DNA of 64,000 nucleotides, taken from positions 886,025-950,024 of the forward strand of contig OZ251252.1 in NCBI GenBank assembly GCA_965240325.2, in the 5' to 3' direction. How positions within the stretch are numbered: the stretch's first letter is position 1; every line of letters begins with the position of its first letter. The translations under genes were made by a program, and so were the position numbers. Below are positions 57,401 to 60,400 of the stretch, piece after piece. The notes under the pieces were generated by a model. The model was given only the letters and a program-made list of their open reading frames with translations, was not told the origin of the DNA and searched no databases. The stretch is from Rebecca billardiae RCC1528. Its lineage: Eukaryota > Protista > Haptophyta.

Positions 57401-60400
57401 CCGCCGTCCGCGCCGCCGCTGCCGCCGTCGTGCGCCGAGGCGCTGCTCCGCGCGCTCTACCTGCCGCTGCCCGTGCAGCGCGGGCTGCTGCTCCGGCTGC
57501 TCGCCGCCGCGGCGGAGGCGCCGCCCGTCGCCGCCTCGCTCTCGCACGGCCTCGTTCTCACCGTCGCCCTCGCGGCCGGCCCTACCCCTACCCCTACCCC
57601 TAACCCTACCGCTACCCCTACCCCTAGCCCCAACCCCAGCCTCGGCCTCACCGGCGCCCTCGCGGCCGGCGCGCACGGCGGCGGCGGCGGCGGCGGCGGC
57701 GGCGGCGGTGGTCTCGGCGGCGAGGAGCAGCAGCCGGGTGGCGGCGGCGCGGTGGAGGCGGCGGCGCGCGCGGACGCGGAGGCGGCGCGCGCGCGCGCGC
57801 CGACGCGTCCGCGCGCGCGCGCGCCTCCGCGCAGCCGTGCGCGCCGCCGTTCGGCTCCTTCGCTCTGCTCGGCACGGCCGCGGCCGCGGCGGCGGCCGCG
57901 GGCGGCGGCGGCGGCGGCGGCGGCGGCGGCGCGGTGGTGGGCGCGCCCGCCGATGCCGCGGCTGGTGGCGCCGCGGCCGGCGCGGCGCGGCCGCCGCCGC
58001 TTGTCGCGCGCCGCGCGCTCGAGCTGCTCACGCAGCTCGCGCGCGCGCGCACGTCCGTGGCGCGCGCGCTCACGCAGGCGGCGGCGGACGGCGGCGCCGC
58101 CGCGGACGGCGCCGCGCCGCCGGTTGTCGAGTTGCTCCGGCTGCTGCCGCGCGCGCCGTACGCGCAGCACGCGTCGCACGCAGAGGCGCTGCTCGGGGCT
58201 GTTGCCACGGCGGTGGTGAGCGCAGAGGTGCAGCACGAGGCGGAGGCGGAGGCGGAGGCGGAGGCGGGGGCGGAGGCGGAGGCGGCGCGCGCCGGCCAGC
58301 GCGAGCCCGGCGGCGGCGCGCCCGCGGGCGCGCCCGCGGGCGCGGGCGCGGGCGGCGCGCTCGAGGCGGCGGCGGGCGGCGCGCCGGCCGGCGCGCCGCC
58401 GCGCGCCGCCGCCGCCGCCGCGCCGCCGCTGCAGGTCCCCGCGGACGCGCTGCGCGAGCTCGCCCTCGCGCTCGCGCGGCCGCACTGCACGCCGCCTCTC
58501 GCCGCGCGCGCCTCGCTGCTGCTCGGCCGGCTCGGCCGGCGCGCGCGCGCGGACGCGCGCGCGCAGATGCTGAGCGCGCTGGCGGGCGCGGCGTCGGACG
58601 CGGGTGCGCGCGTGCGCGCCCACTTTGAGGGCCTCGCGGCCGAGCTGCGCGCCGAGGGCGTGGGCGCGGACGGCGGCGGCGCCGGCGAGGGCGCGGGCGC
58701 GCCGGGCGGCGGCGGCGGCTCGGCGGCCGGCGCCGGCGCCGCGGGCGCGAGCGGCGGCGCCGCCGCCGCGGCCGGCTCGGCGGCGGCGGCGGCGGGTGCG
58801 GGTGCGCCGCTCGCGTCGCGCGCGCTCGCGCGCTTCGCCGCGCAGCCCGCGCAGGAGGAGACGCGGCTGCTGCGCCTCGTCGCCGCGCTGCACGCGCCGT
58901 TTTCGACCGTCGCGGCGCGCGGCGGCGGCGGCGGCGGCGCGGACGGCGGCGCGGACGGCGCCGCCGCCGCGCTCGCCGCCGCGGCTGACGCGGGCGGGCG
59001 GCGCGGCGGCTGGCGGCACGGCGGCGGCGAGCCGAGCCTGCGCGCCGAGGCGCACGCCGCGCTGCGCGCCGCCGGCCTCGGCCCCGTCTGGGCCTCTCTC
59101 TCCGACGCGATCGCGCTCGTCGCCGCCGCCGCGGGCCGCTCGGCGGGCGGGCTGTCCGCGCCCGGCGCGGCGCCGCTGCTGCTGCGGCTGCTGCCGGCGG
59201 TGTCGGCGCTGCTGCTCGCAAAGGCGCACGCGGCGGCGGAGGCGGGCGCCGGGGCCGCGCCCGCGGCCGACGGTGGCGACGACGCCGAGCGCGGCGGCGC
59301 CGCCGGCTCGGCCGCGCCCGCCGCGCCCGCCGCGCCCGGCGGCGGCAGCGCGGGCGCGGGCGCGGGCGCGGGCGGCGGCGGCGGCGGCGGCGGCGGCGCG
59401 GACGGCGTGGCGCAGTCGGAGCTCGATGCGTTCGCCGAGCGGCACCGGCTCGTGCTCAACGCGCTCGTGCGCGCGCAGCCCTCGCTGCTGCTCGGCGCGT
59501 TCCGCCCGCTCGTCGCGCGCCCGTCCCTCCTCGACTTCGACAACAAGCGCCGTTGGTTCTCCTCCCAGCTGCGCGCGCACCACGCGGCGCACTCGGGCGC
59601 GCCGCTGGGCTCGCTCGCACTGCACGTGCGGCGGCGGCACGTGTTCGAGGACAGCTACCACCAGCTGCGGCTGCGCTCGGCGCAGGAGCTGCGCGGCAGG
59701 TGTGTGCGCGCGCGCGGAGGCGGAGCCGCGCCGAGGGCGGTGCTGCTGCGCGGCGTGGGTTAGGGTTAGGGTTAGGGTTAGGTGCTGCTGCGCGGCGTGG
59801 GCGCCTTGCGCTGCGCGCACCCGCCGCCACGCGCGCGCGCGCGCGCTCACGCCCCCGCCGGCCCGCCCTTGCCGCGCCCCCCCCGCCCCCCGGCCGCGCA
59901 TCAGGCTGTCGGTGCGCTTCGCGGGCGAGGAGGGCATCGACGCGGGCGGCGTGGCGCGCGAGTGGTTCCTCGTCCTCAGCCGGGAGATCTTCAACCCGGA
60001 CTACGCGCTCTTCAAGGTGCGGCCTCGACCACGACCCTAACCCTAACCCTAGCCCTACCCTAACCCTAGGCCACGAGCACAACGCAGGCGGGCGGACCGC
60101 CGGGGGCACGGGCGGGACGGGCGGGGCGTGCGGACGCCCCGGTGCCGGGGCGTGCGGGGCGTGCGGGCCCCGCGGGGGCACGGGCGGCGGGGCGGGCGTG
60201 TGCGCGTGCGTGCGGGCGTGCAGTCGCACACCCAGCTCACGCGCGCCCGCCGCCGCGCGCGCCACCTCTCGCGCGCGCGCGCGCCTCAGCCGTCCGCTGA
60301 CAACGTGGCCACCTTTCAGCCTCGCGAGAACTCGTACATCAACCCCGACCACCTGCACTACTTCCGGTTCGTGGGGCTGGTGGTGGGCAAGGCGTTGTAC

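Follow-up and report, generated by a model that had tools for sequence, protein, structure and literature searches.

A short telomeric tract between perfect 21-bp direct repeats in a HECT ubiquitin ligase intron of the haptophyte Rebecca billardiae: a probable scar of break repair by telomerase

In 2004 Nergadze et al. reportedly attributed vertebrate short interstitial telomeric sequences to insertion in the course of double-strand-break repair. Comparisons of such loci place the insertions at double-strand breaks, with in-register microhomology at about 75% of loci and a target duplication, attributed to staggered breaks, at 4.5-16% (PMC2246262, PMC7215372). A separately described process, fill-in by CST/Pol alpha-primase followed by end joining, turns breaks whose 3' protrusions are complementary into small tandem duplications (Schimmel et al. 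2021, PMC8355091). Here we describe a telomeric tract flanked by a perfect 21-bp duplication at 59739-59801 of a 64,000-nucleotide stretch of DNA from the haptophyte alga Rebecca billardiae RCC1528 (the whole stretch is called the window below, and positions are those of the window unless a contig is named). The window is C36:886025-950024 (contig OZ251252.1), the last 64 kb of a 950,024-bp contig. We consider it probable, though some way from certain, that the tract is a short interstitial telomeric sequence and the scar of a repaired chromosome break that telomerase had begun to cap. Short interstitial telomeric sequences formed at repaired breaks are already known from vertebrates, and the locus belongs with them; what sets it apart is its algal host, the length and frequency of the duplications and the regularity of the class to which it belongs.

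Direct reading of the window letters gives ggtgctgctgcgcggcgtggg at 59739-59759, ttagggttagggttagggtta at 59760-59780 and an identical copy of the 21-mer at 59781-59801, all described here on the + strand. The left copy (GGTGCTGCTGCGCGGCGTGGG) ends in GGG, the putative primer end; the insert is (TTAGGG)3TTA (TTAGGGTTAGGGTTAGGGTTA), whose G-rich strand is sense with respect to the gene; and the first GG of the right copy, in register with the tract, is a putative 2-nt joining microhomology. GGG thus precedes TTAGGG and GG follows TTA, and the sequence before the insertion would be that of a single 21-mer, as read from its duplicated copies. All 63 of the 63 bases of the 21-mer, tract and 21-mer are perfect, which suggests that the insertion is young. 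The 21-mer is present exactly twice in the window even when 3 mismatches are allowed (0.12 occurrences expected from shuffled sequence, in which none reached 2), (TTAGGG)2 has 5 matches in the window against 0 in 100 shuffles, and Tandem Repeats Finder (TRF) detects 4.3 perfect copies of a 6-bp unit at 59757-59782 and nothing there with a period of 42 bp. A DNA search of the assembly found the flanks of the tract to be unique in the genome. The tract is a short, exact run of the telomeric repeat of this organism within internal DNA that is not repetitive, and the modification of its flanks falls in the duplication class. In these respects it resembles the vertebrate tracts (Nergadze 2007, Santagostino 2020; PMC2246262, PMC7215372), which also consist of a few exact hexamers of the host's own telomere in unique DNA, have nucleotides in register at the 3' side of the break and include a subclass with a direct target duplication.

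The gene that holds the insertion encodes a giant HUWE1/UPL1-like HECT ubiquitin ligase. Matches to UBM, UBA and, weakly, DUF913 fall in an open frame of 4577 codons (44486-58219), and the exons downstream match Pfam HECT; the exons were searched singly. The 3' part of the upstream coding exon (59401-59699, + strand) ends with ...ELRG and the AG of a split Arg codon, and this exon matches the HECT ligase P0001 of a relative at 56% identity (BLASTP, E 2e-28). The 205 nt that follow (59700-59904, + strand) start with GTGTGTGC and end with ATCAG. They are taken to be an intron because they start with GT and end with AG and because the open frame from the upstream exon runs into a stop in the telomeric tract (open reading frame end 59763); without the 42 added bases this intron would be 163 nt long. 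Coding resumes at 59905 after ...ATCAG, where ELRGR and the next 15 residues match the relative, and the downstream exon (59905-60016, + strand; G plus 37 residues), which is the start of the HECT domain and has a homologous stretch in the relative, is followed by the next intron at 60017. An earlier account of this DNA from its letters (the sequence-only reading) had claimed a perfect 21-bp duplication around a telomere repeat at 59739-59801, with a left copy ending in GGG and a right copy starting with GG, both in the TTAGGG register, inside an intron of a HECT gene. The duplication is borne out jointly by the letters, TRF and the 21-mer count, the register is plain in the letters, and the GT...AG limits, the frame stop and the alignment to the relative's HECT ligase all agree with the intron. 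Since it is intronic, the insert is probably without function. For the HECT gene the insertion is probably neutral, and it is among the minority of tracts that place the G-rich strand in the transcript; in this orientation the insert brings in GT and AG dinucleotides, at which cryptic splicing could occur.

Does the same arrangement occur elsewhere in this genome? We searched the 72-Mb genome with a pattern of at least 2.5 perfect units preceded by eight non-A bases, which shuts out the noisy terminal arrays, and obtained 51 sites; 40 independent internal tracts were kept after a transposon family and true telomeres had been dropped. An exact direct repeat of at least 11 bp abuts both edges of 10 of these 40 tracts (range 11-49 bp), while such a repeat abuts 77 of 3000 random pseudo-inserts of matched length in the same DNA (2.6%; Fisher p 9e-8). 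For exact repeats of at least 20 bp the corresponding counts are 5 of 40 and 13 of 3000, so that the enrichment over random sites is ~10-fold at the lower threshold and ~30-fold at the higher. Other perfect microsatellites (unit 4-8, 18-60 bp) have a flanking repeat of at least 10 bp in 0 of 33 cases. The flanking repeats are specific to telomeric tracts. The genome scan that the sequence-only reading had proposed thus finds direct repeats to be commoner around TTAGGG tracts than at random sites or other microsatellites. When imperfect repeats are also counted, ~15 of the 40 tracts carry duplications of 11-49 bp. Perfect repeats were seen at L070 (32 bp), L059 (31 and 25 bp, at two tracts), the window site (21 bp) and L066 (13 bp); near-perfect repeats of ~23-30 bp at L048, L051, L052, L060 and L064; an 11-bp repeat at L031; and three duplication cases beyond this first set at L077, L079 and L080. 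At two loci the host segment (A) and the tract (T) have been amplified to A-T-A-T-A, with a unit of 69 bp at L037 (C18:1812269) and 53 bp at L080 (C1:4753326), which shows that a scar of this sort can give rise to a minisatellite. Many of the tracts are exonic and are read in frame with the coding sequence. Transcription orientation judged from codon-phase GC gives the C-rich strand as sense in 19 cases and the G-rich strand in 11, with 7 unclear, a weak bias that is too noisy to use. In the window the C-rich strand is sense in 6 of 7 telomere-like tracts (gene strands as read), and the tract at 59760-59780 is the exception.

Where a duplication fixes the boundaries of an insert, its two junctions can be read exactly; we call near the junction that is 5' on the G-rich strand. 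When the host copy at the near junction ends in a run of G, the repeat continues in register (GGG|TTAGGG in the window, and likewise L060, L052, L048, L066 and L031). After a host copy with a final C, the first letters of the insert are (C)TAGGTTAGGG, which lacks one G of a regular repeat. Seven bounded inserts start in this second way (L037, both tracts of L059, L070, L077, L079 and L080); the insert at 59760-59780 does not. The far junction has either 1-3 nt of G microhomology (GG in the window) or a filler of 2-5 nt (TACCT at L059, GC at L052, GAC at L048). Such an asymmetry between the near and far junctions fits one end having been primed and extended and the other having been end-joined.

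The short start is also found at natural chromosome ends. TTAGGG arrays cap contigs (terminal arrays were read), and 9 of the 13 contig-end arrays sampled (L133-L142, L082, L083, L017) begin TAGGTTAGG(G), again one G short. These starts stand beside unrelated unique flanks at the right ends of C33, C10, C21 and C5 and at ends of C2 and C6, and at three different breakpoints of an 18-bp subtelomeric satellite at C15 left, C27 right and C39 left. A separate pattern search found CTAGG(TTAGGG)5 at six contig ends. The 18-bp satellite, (CCCTAACCCTTACCTGCG)n, lies directly inside the terminal array (L133, L134, L083), its C-rich strand facing the G-rich telomere. Because the same start occurs in unrelated contexts, its cause should be sought in the enzyme and not in the flank; chromosome ends are built by telomerase, for which the genome has a single TERT gene (C24). 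The start rule shared by the internal inserts and the chromosome ends thus points to telomerase as the enzyme that made the inserts. This signature is a property of the class; at 59760-59780 itself only the GGG/GG register is visible.

The class differs from the vertebrate tracts in several ways: its host is a very GC-rich alga, duplications (here 11-49 bp) occur at 25-40% of the young tracts as against 4.5-16%, it has one start sequence, TAGGTTAGGG, in common with most chromosome ends, and many tracts are exonic and in frame. At some vertebrate loci nucleotides beside the telomerase RNA template were copied, which is comparable to the TAGG start here. The inserts are also like chromosome healing, or de novo telomere addition, in which telomerase primes on a short G-rich microhomology or falls back on a default position of its template, and in this genome the natural ends and the internal tracts have the same start; unlike healing, the extended end at the window site would have been rejoined after only 3.5 repeats and no new chromosome end was made.

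The following course of events would account for the window locus. A break would occur in the intron and both of its ends would come to carry the same 21 nt, by either of two routes: two nicks 21 bp apart on opposite strands could leave complementary 3' overhangs, or limited copy synthesis (a few tens of nt) from the sister chromatid could take place before joining. Telomerase would prime on the ...GCGTGGG 3' end, whose GGG would pair with the C-rich part of the RNA template, and would add TTAGGGTTAGGGTTAGGGTTAGG (3.5 repeats). The new GG-3' would then anneal to the CC-3' end of the other overhang, and fill-in, probably by the CST/Pol alpha-primase route, and ligation would seal the chromosome, giving 21-mer, 21 nt of telomere repeat and 21-mer. 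The sequence-only reading had likewise proposed that telomerase extended one end of a staggered break, which was then rejoined. The enrichment of flanking repeats, the start rule, the TERT gene and the junctions favor the extension and the rejoining, while the staggered break has become one of two possible routes. Like the CST/Pol alpha-primase duplications (PMC8355091), the locus has what would be a directly duplicated overhang of tens of bp, and this genome is rich in such duplications; unlike them, it has a filler, putatively made by telomerase, between the copies, and the roles of CST, Pol alpha and non-homologous end joining here are putative.

Several observations weigh against telomerase having repaired a break at this site. 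A DNA search of the assembly with window positions 59300-60020 gave only the locus itself and low-complexity matches, and so no empty allele; nor did the genome contain a paralogue or haplotig of the locus. In metagenomes all 31 exact matches to the 21-mer were on bacterial-looking contigs with unrelated flanks, one of these contigs coming from a gut metagenome, and all were set aside. A protein word search with region 400-609 of the 609-aa open frame had P0001 as its sole match; the P0001 contig has the HECT domain and no telomeric tract, and its intron is six codons downstream. Given the distance of this relative and the displacement of its intron by six codons, its locus is of no use as an empty site, and we infer the insertion from one allele and not from an orthologous empty site. 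The 3 + 2 nt of register are the only enzyme-specific clue at the locus, where G makes up ~40% of the bases, and the chance background of direct repeats in low-complexity DNA is not small (the 2.6% at 11 bp or more given above). The site was read in the assembly, in which an error there is conceivable. The TAGG start could also come from the copying of a chromosome-end junction as DNA. Finally, the genome has at least three families of long interspersed nuclear elements (LINEs) with intact open reading frames of 2000-3300 aa that bear Exo_endo_phos and RVT_1 domains, and LINE insertions give variable target duplications.

The copying of telomeric DNA is the substance of an explanation by template switching, of the type called microhomology-mediated break-induced replication or fork stalling and template switching (MMBIR/FoSTeS), in which the ...GGG 3' end would anneal to telomeric DNA at a chromosome end or an internal tract, copy ~21 nt and return 21 nt behind its point of departure, with no part played by telomerase. 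Microhomology is present at both junctions, and a flanking duplication together with templated filler is the expected mark of such a return. For 3' ends that end in C, pairing would be possible only at a chromosome-end junction that reads ...GCGCC|TAGGTTAGGG; several ends have such a junction, and its use would give the TAGG start. Template switching nevertheless leaves unexplained why the chromosome-end junctions themselves start with TAGG beside unrelated flanks and at different breakpoints, for which a cause at the level of the enzyme is needed; and once telomerase is accepted at the chromosome ends, it explains the internal tracts too. Moreover, no duplication-bounded insert contains subtelomeric sequence from upstream of TAGG, and the inserts are always short, uniform telomeric runs. 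We therefore think template switching unlikely. The insert might instead have been made by target-primed reverse transcription, with the endonuclease (of the apurinic/apyrimidinic, or APE, type) and reverse transcriptase of a LINE acting on a telomeric-repeat RNA (a transcript like telomeric repeat-containing RNA, TERRA, or a fragment of the telomerase RNA), in which case staggered nicks would give the variable duplication. The genome holds the machinery, as said above; the LINEs at C5:1899170, C11:2356181, C19:345539 and other places are single open frames in several near-identical copies, and the non-long-terminal-repeat (non-LTR) families to which they belong, at least three, are probably active. 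A primed tail would be in register with the tract where it starts, and so is the right copy of the 21-mer. The duplications of the class also vary in length (11-49 bp), as those of non-LTR retrotransposons do, a feature that is not peculiar to that family. The insert at 59760-59780 is, on the other hand, 21 nt of pure telomeric repeat, and no element sequence was found in any bounded insert (LINE 3' tails were not among the sequences compared); short fillers occur on the side where priming should be precise, duplications of up to 49 bp are long for APE-type LINEs, and the fixed TAGG start is common to chromosome ends, which LINEs do not build. We judge this origin very improbable.

The target-site duplications of non-LTR elements, and endonuclease-deficient Penelope-like elements on telomeric overhangs (PMC8557442), resemble the present class in the variable direct repeats around reverse-transcribed DNA, in a connection with telomeric repeats and in the kinship of their reverse transcriptases with TERT; unlike them, the inserts here have no element body, tail or ribozyme, are pure telomeric repeat and start as the chromosome ends do. 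No Penelope-like element with an endonuclease was seen, the one GIY-YIG match having no adjoining reverse transcriptase. An introner or cut-and-paste DNA transposon was rejected: there are no inverted termini, the duplication length varies from 11 to 49 bp, and the insert lies inside an existing intron and forms none. There might also have been no insertion at all, either because replication slippage copied part of a pre-existing 42-bp unit (the 21-mer and the tract) a second time, as a newborn minisatellite, or because the structure is an artefact of assembly or polishing. The region is full of small tandem duplications, the A-T-A-T-A amplifications at L037 and L080 show that slippage does act on such units, and the reading of the site from the assembly leaves room for an artefact. 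Slippage of an A-T unit would, however, give A-T-A-T and not A-T-A, and the origin of the tract would still have to be explained; TRF finds no 42-bp period at the site, where no whole unit is repeated head to tail. The same architecture at more than 15 unrelated loci with diverged copies is not something that an assembler invents, and other microsatellites are without flanking repeats. Slippage or artefact is accordingly an account in which we place very little confidence.

If telomerase built both the chromosome ends and the internal inserts, the start sequence predicts a telomerase RNA template of 5'-CCCUAACCUA-3', in which G's just 3' of the template could pair with DNA ends that end in C. 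Isolated TAGGTTAGGG, with non-telomeric sequence on both sides, was found only in three subtelomeric copies in a search that covered about two thirds of sequence space. These near-identical copies are at C1:5077266 (L073), C21:1610699 (L074) and C37:894864 (L075); their other strand reads ...ACCG-CCCTAACCTAGG-CGCGCG..., and there is an AT-rich patch ~130 nt upstream. They sit in a segmental duplication of more than 1.5 kb, and because the copies share it, conservation does not delimit a gene at this locus. A search of Rfam gave no match there. RNAalifold applied to the three copies leaves the template core unpaired and finds one compensatory pair, which is too little to call a telomerase RNA. 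The locus is thus an unproven candidate for the telomerase RNA gene.

Whether telomerase acts at ordinary breaks, and by what means the cell stops it, is an active question, for which most of the natural evidence so far is a few hundred vertebrate loci compared across species. The present genome is a compact second system outside animals, with young scars bounded by their own duplications, a start rule and a testable prediction of the RNA template, and its long and frequent duplications tie what telomerase does to the route by which small tandem duplications form at 3'-protruding breaks. Perfect tandem duplications of small size (units of 11-50 bp) number 40 in the window alone, where Markov-chain controls have ~1.5, a ~25-fold excess that fits a duplication-prone repair regime, and because of it the telomeric scars may be that subset of small-tandem-duplication events which telomerase reached first. 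Many of the window duplications have 12-bp units and lie in coding low-complexity DNA. A much broader proposition is that telomerase routinely competes with end joining at internal breaks and leaves a datable genome-wide record (~100 perfect tracts beside many that have decayed, ~12-fold denser on small chromosomes); that the shared first-pass product TAGGTTAGGG reveals the template 5'-CCCUAACCUA-3' and singles out C1:5077266/C21:1610699/C37:894864 as the telomerase RNA gene; and that the scars with their 11-49 bp duplications regularly supply exons with new peptide loops and introns with new sequence. Taken as one joint claim this is tentative, and we would sooner expect it to fail in some part than to hold as a whole.

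Perfect internal tracts are ~12-fold denser on the small contigs (29 in the ~14.3 Mb of C27-C39 and ~10 in the ~58 Mb of C1-C26), and this higher density on small chromosomes may reflect more breaks or recombination per Mb. The window itself is 67-89% G+C, and the insertion site is 4.2 kb from the assembled end of C36, at which there is no telomere array; the other end of C36 has one. At the very end of the contig (63061-63803) are two tandem copies of a unit of ~345 bp in which the same open frames are repeated; they resemble a repeat of the subtelomere, in which the assembly would have broken off before it reached the telomere.

The HECT gene contains a second tract, at 57580-57633 (region 57549-57670), which has the C-rich strand as sense and is translated in frame (a stretch of 19 residues); the direct repeat on either side of it is ~32 bp long and imperfect, with an exact match over 16 bp at its core (CGCCCTCGCGGCCGGC), and the tract is an older, exonic scar of the same kind as 59739-59801. 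A C-strand telomeric tract at 60035-60069 lies in the HECT-gene intron that starts at 60017, 18 nt past the donor, and its flanking repeat is just 6 bp (CCACGA). Elsewhere in the window the tract at 7502-7551 (GGGCTAGGGTTGGGGTTAGGG...; region 7469-7562) has a direct repeat of 13 bp, GGCCGCAGCGCGG, on either side, at 7469 and 7550, and tracts at 56746-56781 (translated, 11 residues), 44016-44039 and 11616-11682 are without a clear duplication.

One recurrent flank among the genome-wide matches, ...CTCGTCCTAGG, proved to be part of a 1-kb foldback element with a central tract and was left out of the statistics. The element is ~1 kb long and low in GC (~45%), with long inverted arms and GGTTAGGGTTAGGGTTAG exactly at its centre (L123, 4500-5500). 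It is also found at L032, L040, L041, L057, L062 and L124, and there are at least five near-identical copies on different contigs.

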